Shown here: one piece after another, positions 32,588 to 54,844 of the stretch
Numbering within the stretch: the first letter of the stretch is position 1
Layout: every line of letters starts with the position of its first letter
Sequence record: MW749006.1
DNA length: 64,000 bases
Reading direction: 5' to 3' (one strand)
The notes under the pieces: model-generated
Told to the model about the DNA's origin: nothing
Databases searched by the model: none
Seen by the model: only the letters and a program-made list of their open reading frames with translations
Program-made: the position numbers and the translations under genes

Positions 32588-33844
32588 ATGTCTAAGAAGT
32601 TATTTGCAATGGAAGAAATGGACAACGAAATCTCTGATGTAGAATTAGAAGTTGGTCCAGAAGAAGGCGAAGTTGCTGACGTTCAAGCTGAAATGGAAGC
32701 TGAAATTGCTGACGTTGCTAGCGATGCTGACGGTATTGAAAACGCTGAAGAAGCTGGTGATCAACTAGCTGAAGTTGGTGAGTTAGTACAAGGTGCTGGT
32801 GAAGAAGGCGAAGGTCTTGATCCAGTTGCTGCTGAAGCTGTTCGTATCGCTGTTGAAGCTATCTGTGCTCGTGTTGGTGCTGATCCTAAGAAAATGGGTA
32901 TGTACCACCTGTACGCTACTGAGAACTTTGCTTCTACTTCTTCACGTAAAGCAAACACTCAGATCGCTCTTGAAGGTATCAAAGACTTCCTGAAAGAACT
33001 GTGGGCTAAAATCAAATCAGCAGTTTCTAACCTTTGGAAGAAAGTAACTGATTTCTGGAACAAGCACTTGTCTTCACTTGGTCGTATTCAGAAAGCTCTT
33101 GAGTCTATGAAGAAGAAAGTTGCTGCATCTAAAGGTGAGTTCAAAGGCACTAGCATCATCGAGAAAGCTCCTAGTGGTTTAGTAAGCTTGTTCCCTGGTG
33201 AAGGTAACTTGAGCCATGGTCGTATCTCAACCATGATCAAATCTCACGAAGAAGCGCACACTGCTTTTGGTAAGGTTGCTAACTCTACCTCTAAGTTGGG
33301 TGATGATTTAATCAAAGCACTGAACGCAGCTACTCCAGACGAAGCTAGCATCACTGCAGAACTCGCTAAACTAAGCGTAAGTACTGATGCTGTTGATTTT
33401 GGTACTGAAGCATCTCCTTTGGTTGGTGGTGTTCATTACAAGTACGAGTTCGTTAAAGACGACGAAAACGGTAAAGTAACTGTTACTGTAAGCACTGACA
33501 AAGTTGAAGCTGGCGATGCTGAACCAAAAATGACTGCTGGTGGTAAAGATGATCTTAAAACTATCATCGACTCAACCTTAGCTGTTATTAAGACTGCTTC
33601 TAAAGTTCGTGTTGAACTTGACAAGTCTGGCAAAGAGTTTGACAAGGTTATGAGTTCTATCCAGAAGTACATTAGTAAGCTGGATGAAACTGGTCAGACT
33701 AGCGTTTCTAATGCTCTTACCACTATCCGTGGTGTTAACACTAACCTGTTGACCTTCTCTACTAAGTTGATTGGTGGTGATGTTCGCTTGGCTAAAGGTG
33801 TTATTGGTTACGCAAGCGCTTCTATGAAGCTGTACAAAGCTTAA
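32588..33844 (+). CDS. Inner-head (ejection) protein, paralog 1 (phiKZ gp93-97 family)
   Basis: Acidic propeptide, ATEN/ALEG processing motifs, IKDFLKELWAKIK helix. Confidence 0.7.
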   Translation: MSKKLFAMEEMDNEISDVELEVGPEEGEVADVQAEMEAEIADVASDADGIENAEEAGDQLAEVGELVQGAGEEGEGLDPVAAEAVRIAVEAICARVGADPKKMGMYHLYATENFASTSSRKANTQIALEGIKDFLKELWAKIKSAVSNLWKKVTDFWNKHLSSLGRIQKALESMKKKVAASKGEFKGTSIIEKAPSGLVSLFPGEGNLSHGRISTMIKSHEEAHTAFGKVANSTSKLGDDLIKALNAATPDEASITAELAKLSVSTDAVDFGTEASPLVGGVHYKYEFVKDDENGKVTVTVSTDKVEAGDAEPKMTAGGKDDLKTIIDSTLAVIKTASKVRVELDKSGKEFDKVMSSIQKYISKLDETGQTSVSNALTTIRGVNTNLLTFSTKLIGGDVRLAKGVIGYASASMKLYKA

Positions 33845-33859
33845 GTAGTAACTTGATTA

Positions 33860-33894
33860 GAAACTACCGGGATAAAACCTGGTAGTTTCTTTTC
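33860..33894 (+). terminator. Intrinsic terminator
   Basis: gaaactaccggg-ataaaa-cctggtagtttc plus ttttt. Confidence 0.7.
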
Positions 33895-33937
33895 TACATG
33901 TTCGAATTGTTTGGTATTTATCAATTAGGAGCCTATC

Positions 33938-35194
33938 ATGGCTAAGAAGTTATTTGCACTAGAAGACTTAGAAAACGAAATCTCTGACGTAGAAATGGAA
34001 GTGTCTCCTGAAGAAGGTGAGATTGCTGACGTTCAAGCTGAAGTAGAATCAGAGATGGGTGATATCATTAGCACTGGTGATGGTATTGAAGACGCTGCTG
34101 AAGCTGGTGATCAACTTGAAGAAGTTGGTGAGTTAGTAGAAGGCGCTGAAGAAGGTCTTGATCCAGTTGCTGCTGAAGCTGTTCGTATCGCTGTTGAAGC
34201 TATCTGTTCTCGTCTTGGAGCTGATCCAAAACAAATGGGTATGTACCACTTGTACGCTACTGAGAACTTCCAATCTAGTTCTTCACGTAAAGCAAACACT
34301 CAGATCGCTCTTGAAGGTATCAAAGACTTCTTGAAAGAACTGTGGGAAAAGATCAAGAACGCAGTTAAGTCTCTCTGGAAGAAAGTAACTGATTTCTGGG
34401 CTAAGCATTTGTCTTCACTTGGTCGTATCAAGAAAGCTCTAGAAGCTATGAAGAAGAAAGTTGCTTCTTCTAAAGGTACTTTTAAAGGTACTAGTATCCT
34501 CGATAAAGCACCAAGTGGTTTAGTGTCAGCTTTTGCTGGTAAGAAAACTATCAACGCTGAAGTAGTTACTAGTTATATTGCTAGTCATTCTGCTGTTAGT
34601 GGTGTGTTCCAAGGTGTTATCAATAAGACTTCTGATACACAGTTAATCGTTATTAAGAATTCTGAAGCTGGCGCTGGTGTGTTCAAGAACATCCGTGATA
34701 AAGTAGCTGGTGAAGCTGCGGAGTTCGGTTCTAAAGATGCTCCTCTGATCGGTGGTGTTTACTACAAGTATGAGTTTGAAGTAGAAGAAGATAAAGTTAC
34801 TACTAACGTAACTACTGAAACTATTGATGACGTAGAAACCGAACTTAAAATGATCGCTGGTGGTAAAGAAGATCTTTCTTCTGTTATCGCTAAGACTTTA
34901 GTAGTGATTGATAACACTATCAAAGTTAAAGGTTCTATGGATAAAGCTGGTAAAGAGTTTGATAACCACACTTCAGCTATTGAGCAGTTGATTAACAAAC
35001 GTGAAGGTAATAAAGCGTTTGAAGGTCAGACAGCTCAAGAAGTAACTAAAGAGTTGCGTGATAAACTAAACGTTATTCGTAGCGTTAACGTTGGTCTATT
35101 GACGTTCTCTACTAAGTTAGTTTCTGCTGATGTTAAGTTAGCTAAAGCAGTACTTGGTTTCTGTGCTACTTCAATGAAGTTGTACAAAGATTAA
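33938..35194 (+). CDS. Inner-head (ejection) protein, paralog 2
   Basis: Close paralog of 32588-33844, sharing identical 57-nt and 52-nt DNA blocks. Confidence 0.7.
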   Translation: MAKKLFALEDLENEISDVEMEVSPEEGEIADVQAEVESEMGDIISTGDGIEDAAEAGDQLEEVGELVEGAEEGLDPVAAEAVRIAVEAICSRLGADPKQMGMYHLYATENFQSSSSRKANTQIALEGIKDFLKELWEKIKNAVKSLWKKVTDFWAKHLSSLGRIKKALEAMKKKVASSKGTFKGTSILDKAPSGLVSAFAGKKTINAEVVTSYIASHSAVSGVFQGVINKTSDTQLIVIKNSEAGAGVFKNIRDKVAGEAAEFGSKDAPLIGGVYYKYEFEVEEDKVTTNVTTETIDDVETELKMIAGGKEDLSSVIAKTLVVIDNTIKVKGSMDKAGKEFDNHTSAIEQLINKREGNKAFEGQTAQEVTKELRDKLNVIRSVNVGLLTFSTKLVSADVKLAKAVLGFCATSMKLYKD

Positions 35195-46093: not shown

Positions 46094-46807
46094 ATGTCTA
46101 ATGTAATAGTAGGAAAGAAGTGGGATAAGGGAGCAATCTACATTGGTAGAGGATCTGTCTTAGGTAATCCTTTTGCTATGAAAGATATGTCCGATGAAAC
46201 TCGTGATGAAGTTTGCGATCAATACGAAGATTACTTCTACGAACAGATTGAGAACGATCCTAAGTTTCTAGCTACGGTAGAGAGTTTAATACTGAAAGCA
46301 GAAAAGGGTAAAGTTATACTAGGTTGTTACTGCGCACCTAAACGTTGTCACGGTGATACTATCAAAGATTACATTGATGGACACTTACAGGAAATACCTG
46401 TAAACATCTATATGGGAACGAATGAGAATCCTAACCTAAGTAATCTAGCTCCTAGAAAGTTTAAAGATAAAACTAGTAAGTTGGTTTTCTTTTCAGTTGA
46501 ACATGCTTACCAGTCTTTAAAGAGTGGTTCTTTAGACCAAGAGACTTATGACAAATATCAGGAAGGGAAGAGTTATAAGATCCCTGGTACTTTAGGAACA
46601 CTAACTAACAGTGGTTGGAACCTTAAGTTGATGGAAAGTCTTATCATGCAGTCCTTTGAACAGAACAAAGAAGCTAGAGAAGAATTACTAGCTACAGGTA
46701 CCAGAGAGTTAACGCATACTCAAGAGAAAGGTATATGGAAAAAAGAATTTCCACGTATTCTTATGGAAGTAAGAGATAAACTTAGTTTACGAAATATGAG
46801 TCTATAG
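46094..46807 (+). CDS. DUF4326 - NADAR-like fusion protein
   Basis: N-terminal YIGRGSVLGNPF...LGCYCAPKRCHGD (DUF4326); C-terminal FSVEHAYQSLK...FEQN...LLATG...ILMEVRD (NADAR/YbiA-like). Confidence 0.65.
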   Translation: MSNVIVGKKWDKGAIYIGRGSVLGNPFAMKDMSDETRDEVCDQYEDYFYEQIENDPKFLATVESLILKAEKGKVILGCYCAPKRCHGDTIKDYIDGHLQEIPVNIYMGTNENPNLSNLAPRKFKDKTSKLVFFSVEHAYQSLKSGSLDQETYDKYQEGKSYKIPGTLGTLTNSGWNLKLMESLIMQSFEQNKEAREELLATGTRELTHTQEKGIWKKEFPRILMEVRDKLSLRNMSL

Positions 46808-46868
46808 TTCAATAGTAGAACACCATGCTTTTAACTTGGAGATAGAGGTTCAAATCCTCTTAGACTTA
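46798..46868 (+). tRNA. trnK: tRNA-Lys(UUU), atypical
   Basis: GAGTCTA/TAGACTT acceptor, GTTC/GAAC D-stem, CCATG-CT TTT AA-CTTGG anticodon arm (U-U mismatch), AGAGG-TTCAAAT-CCTCT T-arm; no encoded CCA. Confidence 0.65.
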
Positions 46869-46888
46869 CCTTACACATACATTAATAA

Positions 46889-46964
46889 GCGCCCTTAACT
46901 CAGCGGATAGAGTACCTTCCTTCTAAGAAGGTGGTCGCAGGTTCGAATCCTGCAGGGCGCACCA
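46889..46964 (+). tRNA. trnR: tRNA-Arg(UCU)
   Basis: Canonical cloverleaf: GCGCCCT/AGGGCGC, ACTC/GAGT, CCTTC-CT TCT AA-GAAGG, GCAGG-TTCGAAT-CCTGC, ending ACCA. Confidence 0.95.
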
Positions 46965-47594: not shown

Positions 47595-47608
47595 AGTTTT
47601 AGGAGTTA

Positions 47609-47920
47609 GTTATAGTGGTTCGCTAAAGTTATTAAATACACTTAAACAATTTTTGACTTAGTTATTTAATAGCTTCCACTATAACGACCGTAGGGTATCC
47701 GGCTTCCTAAGAGTGATGTTGTTGCCTCCAAGTTACTCCTGTCGTTACTCTTAGGATAAGTCTAGCACTGCTAGAGAGTTAGTTATTGTTTAGTGCAGCT
47801 CATACCCAAGTGGGACTAGCCCAACCTTAATACCTCGACGTTCTCTTTACGAGGTGGGCCTAATTTCCTCCGGGTAGTGCTAGCAGCTTCGGCTGCTAGT
47901 GCTATTTCTTTTTCTTTTTT
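47609..47920 (+). ncRNA. Unassigned structured RNA / attenuator-like leader ending in a UUCG-loop terminator
   Basis: ORF-free interval with nested stems (47609-18/47676-85, 47627-38/47663-74, 47706-18/47743-55, 47696-702/47870-76, 47819-37/47850-59). It ends in a 13-bp terminator at 47875-47904 plus a U-tract. Confidence 0.55.
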
Positions 47921-47961
47921 CCTCTTTCAATCCAATGACACTATAACAGGAGTTCTCTAAT

Positions 47962-48999
47962 ATGAAAGTCCCAATTCTTGGTATATCACCAAACATAAAC
48001 ATAACTACCGATAAAGGGGTTGTGGAAGTTCGTAACTTAGCTTGTGCTATAGAAGTAGGAGTTAAAGTTAAACCTATTACACCGTACAAATTAAAGAACA
48101 GTTCTGGTGAGTGGGTTAACGTCGTAAGTGTAACTAACCTTGGAACACAATACGTAAGAGACTTTATTGTAGAAGACGGTAGATGTTTTGTAGTTGGTGA
48201 TAATCAACGAGTGTTAACTAATAAAGGATTGTTGTCTGGAGATAATATAAAGACGGATATCGAGATTACTTTACAAGCCGAAGGTGATATAGACTATCCT
48301 CCTGTGGAGTGGGTAGAAGGGTTTCCTTCGTTTCCTTTAGACACTAACTCACTAAGTACTTTAAAGTTATTAGGAATGATCACAGCCTTCGGTAGAGTGA
48401 TACCTGAGTTAGGTGTGATTGGTTTAGAAGATGTTCAGTCTAGAACTGTAGTGGACTTCACTAACTTAATGGAAACAGTTTTCCATTTAGCGCCAGAAGA
48501 CATGGTAAAAACAAAACAGACTACCAACAAAGTTTCAGTACACTACACTCATGTAGGTTTAGCTAGATGGTTAAATGGTCTACTGAATCGAGGTATTCCT
48601 TGTGAAGTAATGAGAGCATCAAAAGAACAAATTCTGATGTTTCTTAAAGGAATGTACGATCAAAGATACAGTCAAACTCAGACTCCTATTAAAGGAGCTA
48701 AGTATGTGTACTACGGTAATAAACCTGTGGTTGCTAGACAAGTGTTTAGTTTGTTGAAAGTTCTAGGTTATTCTCCAAGACTATTAAACGAACAAGATCA
48801 CAAGTACTCTGTTCTGACTACTGGTGTTAATATCCATGAAGATAGTAAGTTAAGATCTAATCTCTATAAAGATGTAACTACTAAAACAGTTAGAGTTAAA
48901 GAAGTTTGTGGGTATCTAGATGAAGTTTACCTTATAGAGATTGATCAAGGTAATAATTATATTGCCGATGGTTTAGTTATTAACACTGGAGTTATATAA
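47962..48999 (+). CDS. Free-standing degenerate intein-like protein (Hint plus LAGLIDADG-like domains, catalytic residues lost)
   Basis: Block A GISPNINITTDKG, block B VGDNQRVLT, LAGLIDADG-like LLGMITAFG and FLKGMYDQRY, blocks F/G EVYLIEIDQGNNYIADGLVINT. Own SD AGGAG; no exteins. Confidence 0.7.
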   Translation: MKVPILGISPNINITTDKGVVEVRNLACAIEVGVKVKPITPYKLKNSSGEWVNVVSVTNLGTQYVRDFIVEDGRCFVVGDNQRVLTNKGLLSGDNIKTDIEITLQAEGDIDYPPVEWVEGFPSFPLDTNSLSTLKLLGMITAFGRVIPELGVIGLEDVQSRTVVDFTNLMETVFHLAPEDMVKTKQTTNKVSVHYTHVGLARWLNGLLNRGIPCEVMRASKEQILMFLKGMYDQRYSQTQTPIKGAKYVYYGNKPVVARQVFSLLKVLGYSPRLLNEQDHKYSVLTTGVNIHEDSKLRSNLYKDVTTKTVRVKEVCGYLDEVYLIEIDQGNNYIADGLVINTGVI

Positions 49000-49001
49000 A
49001 T

Positions 49002-49277
49002 ATGTTTATTGTAAGTAGTTTAGGTTATTGGGTTAGTTTGATAGTTTATGTTACGTTATTGTCAACACTAATAACAACTTATCCTAAGAAAAGAAACCGA
49101 CACATTGATTCTCGTATAGAAGAATCTTTCTTTATTAGAACTGATCTAATGGGTAAGATGACTTATTATGACTTTAAAAACACTGTCTACGTTTTCTTAT
49201 TTGTTATAGCTTTAATACCAGTAATCAACCTTATAGGTATTGGTTACTTACTATGGATGTTATTTACGGAGGACTAA
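49002..49277 (+). CDS. Small two-TM membrane protein
   Basis: Hydrophobic N- and C-terminal helices. Confidence 0.6.
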   Translation: MFIVSSLGYWVSLIVYVTLLSTLITTYPKKRNRHIDSRIEESFFIRTDLMGKMTYYDFKNTVYVFLFVIALIPVINLIGIGYLLWMLFTED

Positions 49278-51994: not shown

Positions 51995-52648
51995 ATGAAT
52001 ACCCCAACACTTTTAGAGAAACCAGAAACCATTACTAAGATGACTACTGTAGAAGCATTTACTACAGCACCAGGTCTAAATCCTTTCTTCTTTTTAACAA
52101 GACAGACTTACAGAACTTTTAAAGATCTTAACATTGACATTAATGAATCTTTAGATACTCGTAAAGTTAGTGATCGTCTTAAAGCAGAAATAAGATTACT
52201 AAATAACAATGTATTATCTAGCTTACTTTTTGATAAGATCCTTTACGATGAGTTTGCTAATCTAACTAAAGAAGAGTTATCTGGTATTAGATTAGAGGTC
52301 AATGATTACCTGTTAGCTGAATGTAGTGGTGAAATACATAATAATTGTAGTCACGATTTCAATCCAGAATCACGTTCAAATTGTCCATTAGAAAAATACT
52401 ATGAAATTACCCCTTTAAATACAAACAGCGGGACCATTTTACTCGTTGTGGTTGATGAGGGATTCCTAAGGAAAGTAACTGGATCAAAAGAAAGTTTCTC
52501 TGAGTTTCTTTCAGACATCCTAGATTACATGTATTCCATTAAATCATTACCTACTAATATACAGCAGATAGTTCAAAGCTACCTGCGGATAAATAATAAT
52601 GAAGATCTCTTGACTAGGATCAAAGTCTCCCTGAGATCAACCAAATAG
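51995..52648 (+). CDS. Conserved protein upstream of the major capsid gene
   Basis: 217 aa, SD AGGAG; synteny with phiKZ gp119. Confidence 0.6.
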   Translation: MNTPTLLEKPETITKMTTVEAFTTAPGLNPFFFLTRQTYRTFKDLNIDINESLDTRKVSDRLKAEIRLLNNNVLSSLLFDKILYDEFANLTKEELSGIRLEVNDYLLAECSGEIHNNCSHDFNPESRSNCPLEKYYEITPLNTNSGTILLVVVDEGFLRKVTGSKESFSEFLSDILDYMYSIKSLPTNIQQIVQSYLRINNNEDLLTRIKVSLRSTK

Positions 52649-52693: not shown

Positions 52694-54844
52694 ATGTCTT
52701 TTAGCAAACTTCTACCGGGTCGTAAGCATAGCACTTTCAATCCAATTGGCGAATTGTCCGAAAAAGTATCCCAGGTAACTGCTTCACGTTCAATGAACGA
52801 CAACGCTGTTGGTACTATGGCTATCGCTTCTGAGTCTATGGATTCACAAAGCCAACAACAACTGTCTAGCTTCTACGGTAACATGGAATCATCTATCCGT
52901 GCTATCGCTGAAGATTTTGATATTGCTGTTGAATCACACCAAATCGAAGCAGCTACTATGGCTGGTGTATTTGGTACTAACCCTAAAGGTTTCATGACCA
53001 CTAAACTTCGTAACCCACAGCAAGGTGCTGTAATGGTTCAGAGTTCAGTAGTTGATGGTCATCCTGAGCGTCCAGTTCTTTCTACTGAAGCTTACGACGA
53101 GCGCGCTAACCGTAACGCACAGATGCAGTCAATCGTTTATAACTTATTGGCTTCACGTCAAGATGAGTTCGGTGAGACTTTCTTCCCAACTATTAACATC
53201 AACCCAACTGAAGTTGGTATCACTCTGTCAGTAAACTTGTTCTATGTTTACAATGACTTCAAACGTGATGTAACTGGTTCACTTGCTAACTACGCTCGTA
53301 AGAACGTAATCCGTGCATACGCTGACTCAGAAATTCTGAAGAACGAATTGACTCGTGTTGTTCCAGTTCGTCGTACTGGCGGTGGTGCTGATGATAACCA
53401 AGCAGTGTTCGCTGCTGATGCTGGTAACTGGTCAGTAGACCTAGGTACTGGTATTGTTGTTCCTACTGGTGCTCTGAAAGTAGACACTAAAGTTGATCTG
53501 TTGGGTATCTCTCAGACTAACGAATTGTTGAACAGCGGTATCATGGGTCCTTCTGATAACCTAGATGCTCACATCAAACTTGAGTCTATCTTCGTTAAGT
53601 TGACCAAAGGTGGTGATTCTGAAGTTGTTCAGATCTTCACTGATAACCTACCTGCTTCTACTTTCACATACGCTCCACAAGGCAACACTCGTCGTATGTT
53701 GTTGAGCATGGATACTGACTCAGTAGTTCTTGATAAGAACCTGAAGACTGTAGCTGGTATTGCTCCTACCGTTCTTCCTGAACTAGCATCTAACAGTGTT
53801 CGTGTTCAGTTGACTGTAAGTGGTTCTGTTGTACTTGATAAAGGTGATTCAATCCTTAACCGTGGTAGCTTGACTCTTACTACTATGCGTAATGCTGGTG
53901 GTGCTCTGGTTACTGGTACTGGTTTTGATGACGTTGCAGCTGTAATTGATACTGCAGAGATCATTGGTTACACCTTGACTGCATTCCGTGCTAACAGCAA
54001 CATCCGTCAACGTGGTCAGTTGTTAGATGGTCAGTCTGAGTACCGTGTAATTACTGTTCCTTACCGTTCACCTATCGCAGCTATCATGCCAGTTAACGGT
54101 GGTGCTAACGATACTTCACCTCTACAGAACCTGGTTACTACTACAGCTATCCGTACTTCTAACGATGCAGTTCATGCACTGTTGAAAGCAGCTGCTGTAT
54201 TGAAAGGTTATGCTCCTATTGCTAACGCAGATGGTAGCTTGCCAGAGATGGAATTCATCGGTCATCACTACGTTAAACCAGTGTTCTTTGAAGAGACCTT
54301 GGATCTGTCTAAAGTAGTTGATAGCTTGAGCTCACACGAGCGTGCTAAAGATATCCGTGCTGCCCTAGTTGAGAAAGTTCGTTTCTACGCTAACGGTATG
54401 TATCGTGAGTCTGAGTACAAAGCAGCAGCAACAGTTCTAACTGGTAGCAAAGACTTCAAACCAACTGTAATCATTGGTACTGATCCAGTTCTTGCTAACT
54501 ACATCCAACACGATGGCGACCTTCGTACTCTGGGTGAGAACTTTGATGTTAAAGTTGTATCTACAATCGACAGTCGTATGAAAGGCAAACTGATGATTTC
54601 ATTCGGTGTCTTTGATGCTTCACGTAACACTGTTGTAAACCCATTGAACTTTGGTAACATGTTCTACTCTCCTGAGTTGACCTTACAGTTGCCAGCTGTT
54701 TCACGTGACGGTGCAGTATCTGAAGAGCTGATCGTTTCTCCTCGTTACCTACACAGCGTTTCACTGCCAATCATGACAGTGCTGACTGTAGAGAACCTGG
54801 CTGACGTTACTTCTAAAGTTACTCGCTTCACTAAAGAGCAGTAA
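52694..54844 (+). CDS. Major capsid protein precursor (phiKZ gp120-like)
   Basis: 716 aa with strongly biased highly-expressed codon usage; processing motifs ASES/STEA; YNLLASRQDEFGETFFPT and LNFGNMFYSPEL motifs. Confidence 0.85.
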   Translation: MSFSKLLPGRKHSTFNPIGELSEKVSQVTASRSMNDNAVGTMAIASESMDSQSQQQLSSFYGNMESSIRAIAEDFDIAVESHQIEAATMAGVFGTNPKGFMTTKLRNPQQGAVMVQSSVVDGHPERPVLSTEAYDERANRNAQMQSIVYNLLASRQDEFGETFFPTININPTEVGITLSVNLFYVYNDFKRDVTGSLANYARKNVIRAYADSEILKNELTRVVPVRRTGGGADDNQAVFAADAGNWSVDLGTGIVVPTGALKVDTKVDLLGISQTNELLNSGIMGPSDNLDAHIKLESIFVKLTKGGDSEVVQIFTDNLPASTFTYAPQGNTRRMLLSMDTDSVVLDKNLKTVAGIAPTVLPELASNSVRVQLTVSGSVVLDKGDSILNRGSLTLTTMRNAGGALVTGTGFDDVAAVIDTAEIIGYTLTAFRANSNIRQRGQLLDGQSEYRVITVPYRSPIAAIMPVNGGANDTSPLQNLVTTTAIRTSNDAVHALLKAAAVLKGYAPIANADGSLPEMEFIGHHYVKPVFFEETLDLSKVVDSLSSHERAKDIRAALVEKVRFYANGMYRESEYKAAATVLTGSKDFKPTVIIGTDPVLANYIQHDGDLRTLGENFDVKVVSTIDSRMKGKLMISFGVFDASRNTVVNPLNFGNMFYSPELTLQLPAVSRDGAVSEELIVSPRYLHSVSLPIMTVLTVENLADVTSKVTRFTKEQ

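Follow-up and report, generated by a model that had tools for sequence, protein, structure and literature searches.

An orphaned intein-like gene without canonical catalytic residues in a phiKZ-like jumbo phage, and its probable origin in a lost ribonucleotide reductase gene

Inteins are usually viewed as parasites that persist by splicing themselves out of an essential host protein, and their endonuclease is expected to decay once homing stops. Here we describe gene gp50 (AGENTSMITH_50; positions 47962..48999, + strand) of Bacillus phage vB_BspM_AgentSmith (MW749006.1; 200,233 bp), which lies in the first 64 kb of the genome, the stretch that we analysed and refer to as the window. The gene has an ATG start, encodes 345 amino acids (aa) plus a stop and is annotated as a hypothetical protein. 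Its product has the layout of a complete LAGLIDADG-containing intein. Judged from the aligned sequences, however, the canonical catalytic residues of both splicing and endonuclease activities have been lost, and the gene is maintained by purifying selection over a long divergence. The reading that we favour, at slightly better than even confidence, is that gp50 is an orphaned, domesticated intein of ribonucleotide reductase (RNR) and most likely a non-cleaving nucleic-acid-binding protein.

Routine annotation gives little sign of this relationship. A Pfam scan of gp50 returned a single weak match, to Intein_splicing (E 0.0046), which is confined to the C-terminal part. PHROGs holds no family for gp50, and a profile of the gp50 family alone matched no PDB sequence. 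Large protein collections contain four other full-length orthologues, which are 84, 69, 54 and ~49% identical to gp50. A search of 1.84 billion representative proteins with the family profile found 44 proteins, and in nearly all of them the matching region is a ~410-aa insert within a protein of 600-1900 aa. These inserts are RNR inteins with a LAGLIDADG domain, located at SK|T, and the profile is linked to them with an E of 1e-25. In seven of the best profile matches that were scanned, Pfam recognised Intein_splicing in all seven, the RNR barrel domain in six and LAGLIDADG_3 in four. The aligned inserts occupy a single site, ...(I/V)SK|C ... SHN|T(V/I)N.P.

The predicted structure agrees with the sequence relationship. 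On an alignment of 29 sequences, AlphaFold2 (AF2) produced a model of gp50 with a predicted local distance difference test (pLDDT) score of 87.6 and a predicted template modelling (pTM) score of 0.87; on an alignment of four sequences the pLDDT was 41.6. As the larger alignment is dominated by true inteins, the single-sequence model of gp50 in the ESM Atlas is a useful independent check, and its nearest structural neighbour is an RNR-intein cluster (TM 0.82). Foldseek ranked the TliVMA, PhoVMA, PI-PkoII, PI-SceI and PI-PfuI inteins at the top for the AF2 model, with E values from 2e-16 (TliVMA) to 1e-8, and matched the middle domain to I-DmoI and I-Tsp061I. In VIA-align superpositions, the Z score was 28.4 over 321 residues for the TliVMA intein and 18-19 for the Hint part against mini-inteins, and in many entries model residues 7..342 were equivalent to the intein from residue 1 to the last. 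The model predicts a Hint fold that is split around an endonuclease domain, and its secondary structure contains two alpha-beta-beta-alpha-beta-beta-alpha half-domains packed via two LAGLIDADG helices. The motifs LGMITAFG and FLKGMYDQRY of gp50 align with blocks C and E. The full intein architecture proposed in a preliminary description of this DNA, which was made from the letters alone, is thus borne out by AF2, Foldseek and VIA-align.

In this layout, residues 1-6 (47962..47979, +) comprise the start codon and a likely remnant of the N-extein. They are followed by the N-terminal part of the Hint domain (residues 7-110; 47980..48291, +), which carries the block A Gly at position 1 and the block B sequence GxxQ (G79, Q82). 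The LAGLIDADG endonuclease-like domain (residues 129-292; 48346..48837, +) has a predicted I-DmoI-like fold, with LGMITAFG as motif 1 and GMYDQRY as motif 2. A short low-confidence linker (residues 293-306; 48838..48879, +), in which the pLDDT drops below 50 at residues 298-302, leads to the C-terminal part of the Hint domain (residues 307-342; 48880..48987, +), with YLIEI..N as block F and a block G that lacks His-Asn. Compared with true inteins, the gp50 family is ~65 residues short between the endonuclease domain and block F, where the linker is found instead. To judge by its position, the lost segment would correspond to the accessory domain of TliVMA. In inteins that carry a homing endonuclease, including TliVMA, this domain aids DNA recognition (PMC8966425).

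The fate of the catalytic residues was established by a column-by-column comparison of 23 true inteins of the RNR SK|T lineage with the five gp50 orthologues. Position 1, a Cys in 23 of 23 true inteins, is Gly in all five members of the gp50 family (G7 in gp50). Block B, which reads (S/T/A)xxH with its His in 23/23, has become GxxQ in 5/5 (G79, Q82), and the block F Asp (23/23) has become Leu in 5/5 (L324). The block F His, again present in 23/23, is Asn or Asp in the gp50 family (N331 in gp50). The nucleophile alternatives of class 2 and class 3 inteins are absent as well, position 4 of block F being a Leu in gp50 and not the class 3 Cys. At the C-terminus, where true inteins have SHN|T, the gp50 family has I(N/K)(T/A/V) followed by G or E (NT, KA, KV, NV). 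In the endonuclease domain, the acid of the first LAGLIDADG motif (Asp in 22/23) is replaced by Phe in 5/5 (F143), and the L-D-G of the second motif (Asp in 21/23) by D-(Q/P)-R (D233-Q234-R235 in gp50), with the Arg present in 5/5. Every catalytic position is therefore replaced in gp50, and most of the replacements are invariant across the five orthologues. Residue -1 is Lys in three of the five orthologues, matching the ...SK|C junction of RNR.

The preliminary description had assigned Gly to Cys1, GxxQ to block B and Leu to the block F Asp, and the alignment with the 23 inteins confirms these assignments; the structural alignment independently places residue 7 on intein residue 1 and residue 342 on the last intein residue. 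No catalytic residue that could have contradicted it is retained. Its reading of the terminal His-Asn as Asn-Thr is less secure. The His-Asn pair is indeed absent, but the C-terminal alignment is ambiguous and can be read either as a substitution of HN by NT, which the structural alignment backs, or as a four-residue deletion of SHNT followed by an extein-like (I)N. Both the terminal His-Asn and the +1 Thr nucleophile are gone in either case. The claim that both LAGLIDADG acids are replaced also stands (F143; Q234-R235), with the caveat that the invariant D233 lies one residue N-terminal of the canonical acid position of motif 2 and leaves a small doubt about this motif.

The gene stands on its own. 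Its frame begins six codons before the equivalent of intein position 1 and ends three codons past the last intein residue, and thus lacks the exteins of a true intein. A Shine-Dalgarno sequence, AGGAG (47948..47952, +), lies 9 nucleotides (nt) 5' of the ATG, and an alignment of the upstream regions shows its GGAG core to be kept at all five orthologous loci. The flanking genes are in different frames and bear no relation to RNR. Furthermore, RNR is absent from AgentSmith, both by annotation of the 200-kb genome and by tblastn with two RNR classes, and no extein of any kind was found in the genome. The description of gp50 as a free-standing gene with its own ribosome-binding site and essentially no exteins accordingly holds, and the possibility that it is a fragment of an intein-containing gene was rejected because exteins are found nowhere in the genome. 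One further, weak intein-like tblastn match, at 34673-34828 on the - strand, is spurious: it is antisense to a gene for a phiKZ internal head protein and contains stops.

The comparison of the orthologues argues against decay. All five are intact at 342-345 aa, so that the continuous 345-aa frame noted in AgentSmith is a property of the family, and neither frameshifts nor neutral decay were seen among the homologues. Fourfold degenerate sites of gp50 are only 38-58% identical and hence near saturation, and a random frame of 345 codons with the composition of gp50 would be expected to contain ~27 stop codons. The ratio of nonsynonymous to synonymous substitutions (dN/dS; NG86 method) is 0.10-0.37 in every pair of orthologues, at a saturated dS of 1.1-1.8, and all domains are constrained (0.26 for Hint-N, 0.18 for LAGLIDADG and 0.16 for Hint-C, with looser linkers). 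The level of constraint is about that of the neighbouring genes gp49 and gp51 and weaker than that of the core structural protein gp52. All five orthologues are syntenic and the position of the gene is fixed. In a maximum-likelihood tree, a very long stem of 3.3 substitutions per site leads to a tight gp50 crown group, which is the pattern expected of a change of function followed by conservation; because of the long branches, the placement of the family within this tree is unreliable. Since gp50 is free-standing, catalytically stripped and kept by purifying selection, the exaptation proposed in the preliminary description is a fair reading; the roles of regulator or protective decoy that it also put forward are conjectural.

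These data leave very little room for the explanation that gp50 is a functionless, decaying leftover of a lost RNR gene, an idea to which the loss of all catalytic residues, the long stem branch and the occurrence of single stand-alone degenerate intein-like open reading frames (ORFs) elsewhere (P0019 and P0043, see below) would lend themselves, but which is at odds with five intact frames at near-saturated fourfold sites and with low dN/dS in every pair, and which we consider highly improbable.

The origin of the gene, which goes beyond what the preliminary description contained, can be approached through the relatives of gp52, a protein common to ~170 phiKZ-type phages. A large outgroup of related phages is recognisable by proteins that share ~47-53% identity with gp52, and the contexts of 14 such loci were retrieved. 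In this outgroup the block consists of gp52, two small genes, an SH3-like gene, a ~200-aa gene and the phiKZ capsid gene. Among the loci with at least 5 kb of upstream sequence, to which this survey was restricted, a gene for the RNR large subunit precedes the gp52-to-capsid block in L018/L020, L021, L019 and L025, but not in L027 and L030. The RNR of L019 and L025 is of class-I type. The RNR of L018/L020 contains an empty site, ...DTAISK|TVNIPADY, which is the same junction as that of the gp50-like inteins. In L021 (6079-7809), an RNR of the L018 type (71% identical) is truncated to 576 aa; it ends 27 residues past SK|TVN and 265 nt before the gp52 homologue, and it is an apparent intermediate in the loss of RNR from the gp52 locus.

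The closest true intein to gp50, P0006, points to the same lineage. Its host RNR is encoded on a contig related to AgentSmith, as this contig also encodes a 719-aa protein 57.6% identical to AgentSmith gp79 and an RRXRR protein at 50% identity. In a related phage (L017 5521-11945), the RNR is called as two ORFs with at least three intein-like inserts. The gap of ~220-390 nt between these two ORFs gave no Rfam hit and is possibly an unrecognised intron.

This synteny, together with the phylogenetic proximity, is most simply explained if gp50 is an intein of the RNR SK|T-site lineage that was orphaned in place. The ancestor would have been a class-1 LAGLIDADG-containing intein inserted at SK|T in an RNR gene that belonged to the phage itself and was located directly upstream of the structural-gene block, as in the related jumbo phages. 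In the AgentSmith clade, the RNR exteins would have been deleted while the part that encodes the intein persisted as a gene of its own, starting 5-6 codons before the former Cys1, stopping 1-3 codons past the former C-terminal residue and using its own ribosome-binding site. The splicing residues and both metal-binding acids would then have been replaced and the ~65-aa accessory segment lost, whereas the Hint plus LAGLIDADG fold would have been retained under purifying selection over a long divergence. 

As to what the protein does, its LAGLIDADG domain offers the best indication. The domain is basic in all five orthologues (isoelectric point (pI) 9.2-9.7, net charge +4 to +7), which puts it among the most basic when compared with the endonuclease domains of true inteins; the Hint part of gp50 is acidic. 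No other part of the protein is as highly conserved: 72 of the domain's 164 residues (44%) are invariant, and the model places a set of family-specific invariant polar and aromatic residues (T184, Q186, H194, Y195, H197, K247, S283 and N290) on the predicted saddle strands. Nucleic-acid binding without cleavage is established for other LAGLIDADG proteins, namely WhiA and the maturases. It is the basic charge, the high conservation, the invariant saddle residues and these precedents that lead us to favour non-cleaving nucleic-acid binding, a function suggested by sequence, model and analogy. The basic, highly conserved beta-saddle would bind nucleic acid in a sequence-specific manner, with DNA the likelier ligand than RNA, and gp50 would be expressed together with the late structural genes that it precedes.

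Several observations weigh against this interpretation. The protein as a whole is slightly acidic (pI 5.5-6.5), and the segment lost at the position of the accessory domain may have reduced its affinity for DNA. A homing site of the ancestral type was not found in the phage genome, where the only matches were chance ones of at most 13 nt. Constraint on the two Hint halves equals that on the LAGLIDADG domain, which also fits a role unrelated to nucleic acids. With only five orthologues, all of them syntenic, there is no natural loss or gain of the gene to inform its function. As regards the origin, no relative with an intein still inside RNR at the gp50 locus was present among the outgroup loci examined.

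Some of the same observations would suit an alternative in which the Hint-LAGLIDADG scaffold now serves the head-gene block as a factor that binds proteins, acts in assembly or associates with the virion. The gene ends 2 nt from gp51, a small hydrophobic protein (49002..49277, +), and gp52 through gp57 are packed tightly after it, gp57 being the phiKZ-type major capsid protein. Hence, gp50 heads a compact late/structural gene block that runs from gp51 to the major capsid gene. This position suggests late expression and is equally compatible with an assembly or virion role. The equal constraint on the Hint halves, the many family-specific invariant residues in Hint-N and the acidic overall pI point in the same direction. 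However, the outgroup phages assemble the same gene block without gp50, and the LAGLIDADG domain has remained basic in 5/5 orthologues. To our knowledge, there is also no precedent for the reuse of a Hint-LAGLIDADG protein without nucleic acid. We consider a role of this kind improbable, if the best placed of the alternatives.

A different partner is suggested by what lies immediately upstream. Between gp49 and gp50 there is a conserved structured RNA of ~320 nt (47596..47917, +), which ends in an intrinsic terminator, a 16-bp GC-rich hairpin with a T-run (stem 47872-47907), just upstream of gp50. The terminator closes a 370-nt non-coding stretch 5' of the gene. The RNA has a folding z-score of -5.08, and 13 of its 75 predicted pairs show compensatory changes across the five sequences. 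Its core is 84-91% identical, as against 38-58% at the fourfold sites of gp50. Two CCUCC motifs are present, one of them in a predicted single-stranded stretch just 5' of the terminator. From the covariation and conservation we take this to be a genuine, strongly constrained structured RNA and a candidate for a new RNA family or class. No Rfam family matched it, including group I introns, T-boxes and riboswitches, even at E up to 10, and its identification as a tRNA or tmRNA was rejected. Exact patterns of the RNA core were not found in IMG/VR or in JGI metagenome contigs, and IMG/VR contained no relatives of gp52. Neither the outgroup loci nor the intron-like gap of the related RNR gene yielded an RNA homologue with nhmmer, and none of 50,697 GenBank phage records contains a second copy of either gp50 or the RNA.

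In each of the five genomes the RNA directly neighbours gp50, and both are missing from every outgroup locus examined. Given this adjacency in five syntenic genomes, a two-component module of the two may be put forward as a hypothesis. In such a module, gp50 would be a maturase-like or chaperone-like binder of the RNA at 47596-47917, the two forming a ribonucleoprotein and possibly being remnants of two self-splicing elements of RNR. The strong structural constraint on the RNA, the presence of several inteins and of the unannotated ~220-390 nt gap between ORFs in the RNR genes of a related phage, and the established existence of LAGLIDADG maturases that bind RNA without DNase activity are all in line with it. 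On the other hand, the RNA resembles no Rfam family, group I introns among them, the strong terminator at its end means that it need not share a transcript with gp50, and no RNA-binding feature was identified in the protein. Co-occurrence among five syntenic relatives, moreover, carries no independent weight. We therefore regard an RNA partner as improbable, and the more specific version, in which the two are a co-opted ribonucleoprotein pair left from the self-splicing elements of the lost RNR gene (an intein and possibly an RNA of intron origin) and the dead LAGLIDADG domain binds the RNA, as distinctly unlikely.

It is also conceivable that gp50 is still a nuclease, namely a stand-alone enzyme for homing or competition that cleaves or nicks the RNR gene or another site in co-infecting relatives by means of a rebuilt, non-canonical active site. 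The invariant D233, immediately N-terminal of the canonical acid position in motif 2, could serve such a site, related phages with empty SK|TVN sites are potential targets, and an active endonuclease can be encoded by a stand-alone gene of intein origin, as HO and WHO demonstrate (PMC7282813). Nevertheless, all five orthologues have Phe in motif 1 and Gln/Pro-Arg in motif 2 at the positions that are Asp in 22/23 and 21/23 true inteins, and among the VMA inteins, the member that lacks these aspartates showed activity only after they had been grafted back (PMC8966425). The fixed syntenic position and the vertical pattern of inheritance are likewise unlike those of a mobile endonuclease gene. Residual cleavage by gp50 is, in our view, quite improbable.

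Comparison with known systems helps to define what sets gp50 apart. The RNR SK|T(V/I)N class-1 LAGLIDADG inteins, for example P0006, share with it sequence homology, the block order A, B, C, E, F, G, the fold and the extein-like junctions, as well as the phage lineage and, by synteny, the locus. Unlike these inteins, gp50 has no exteins, has replacements of the splicing residues and of both acids, is ~65 aa shorter and is separately translated. It is conserved for its own sake, whereas the RNR inteins rescue their host protein. A comparable case within inteins proper is PhoVMA (PDB 7qst), a splicing-competent intein with a degenerated homing endonuclease that has lost both active-site aspartates (PMC8966425). 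Like gp50, it contains a folded LAGLIDADG domain without these residues, and the two structures match with a Z of 25.0. PhoVMA still splices, however, and is maintained because its host protein needs splicing, whereas gp50 has neither a host protein nor splicing residues.

In yeast, HO and WHO are stand-alone genes derived from a VDE-like intein that have kept an active endonuclease and a zinc finger (eLife 2020, PMC7282813). They resemble gp50 in being independent intein-derived genes without exteins and without splicing, HO being a domesticated case, and differ from it in their active LAGLIDADG endonuclease, their C-terminal zinc finger and their location in eukaryotic nuclear genomes; gp50 is a phage gene and lacks the acids. 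No zinc finger or other additional domain is present in gp50, as all of its 345 aa are covered by the intein alignment. The functional analogy that we favour is with WhiA (DUF199) of Gram-positive bacteria, which has a LAGLIDADG scaffold without catalytic acids and has been reused as a DNA-binding regulator. In contrast to gp50, WhiA does not derive from an intein; it lacks a Hint domain and has a helix-turn-helix (HTH) at its C-terminus. In Pfam, the WhiA LAGLIDADG and HTH models did not match gp50, and the C-terminal part of gp50 is the C-half of the Hint domain. The LAGLIDADG maturases of group I introns, such as the yeast bI3 maturase and I-AniI, are similar in that they contain LAGLIDADG motifs, in some cases lack DNase activity and bind a structured RNA encoded adjacent to them. 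They are encoded inside the intron that they assist and have no Hint domain, whereas the RNA beside gp50 is not recognisably an intron. A full-text literature search, which included a 2025 survey of ~800 actinobacteriophage inteins, found no description of a stand-alone, doubly inactivated, phage-conserved intein.

The profile search that linked gp50 to RNR inteins also returned stand-alone degenerate intein-like relatives in unrelated contexts. P0019 (L012 3183-4334) and P0043 (L015 10001-11038) lack canonical N- and C-terminal intein junctions and both LAGLIDADG acids. P0019, on a contig unrelated to AgentSmith, falls within the true RNR inteins in the tree; P0043 adjoins dUTPase and NrdD genes. 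P0033 and P0038 (L014 7749-11173; L016 1-3798) form a second small clade in what is apparently bacterial DNA, where each directly follows a large ORF, which in L014 is a FtsK/SpoIIIE plus Mrr-like protein. A single origin of all these ORFs was rejected, as the tree needs at least two origins. Many viral clusters in the ESM Atlas comprise proteins of 300-450 aa that bear a partial annotation as LAGLIDADG or intein, and stand-alone degenerate inteins may be more widespread.

By its gene content, AgentSmith is a phiKZ-like jumbo phage, with a tubulin-like protein, many split RNA polymerase beta genes and phiKZ internal head proteins. The latter include an adjacent pair of 418-aa paralogous genes (32588-35194, +), annotated as hypothetical, which match PF12699 with E 1e-33 to 1e-39. 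In the structural block downstream of gp50, the record labels the 217-aa gp56 (51995-52648, +) as the putative major capsid protein, but it is the 716-aa gp57 (52694-54844, +), annotated as hypothetical, that is the phiKZ-type major head protein (phrog_3231, E 3e-160). On the other side of gp50, gp49 shows no similarity to its positional counterpart in phiKZ-type phages, the gene before the gp52 homologue, and a short conserved motif between the terminator and the gp50 start codon is not a repeated promoter-like element within the window. Further upstream, genes for tRNA-Lys(UUU) and tRNA-Arg(UCU) lie at 46798-46964 (+), the former beginning inside the last codons of gp46 (46094-46807, +). This gene is annotated as toprim domain-containing and matches DUF4326 instead (E 1.5e-17); its C-terminal half resembles the NADAR domain only below threshold, with 28 bits (E 3e-6) where the cut-off is 35.1. 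Outside the window, the only group I intron that Rfam recognises in the AgentSmith genome (81.8 bits) is at the end of gp112 (~117384-117713; L007 12384-12713), and an endonuclease ORF interrupts the gene for the lytic transglycosylase (gp119-gp121).

In summary, with its host gene and both activities gone and its sequence nonetheless conserved, gp50 presents a clean natural case of viral intein domestication. The only well-studied parallel that we found is that of yeast HO and WHO, which kept their nuclease. The related phages provide snapshots of the path, from an RNR with an empty site through a truncated RNR to an orphan intein without RNR. The gene is therefore a tractable system for the study of how the Hint-LAGLIDADG scaffold is reused. 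Also, the LAGLIDADG/Hint proteins of ~300-450 aa that are listed as hypothetical in phage metagenomes merit re-examination.

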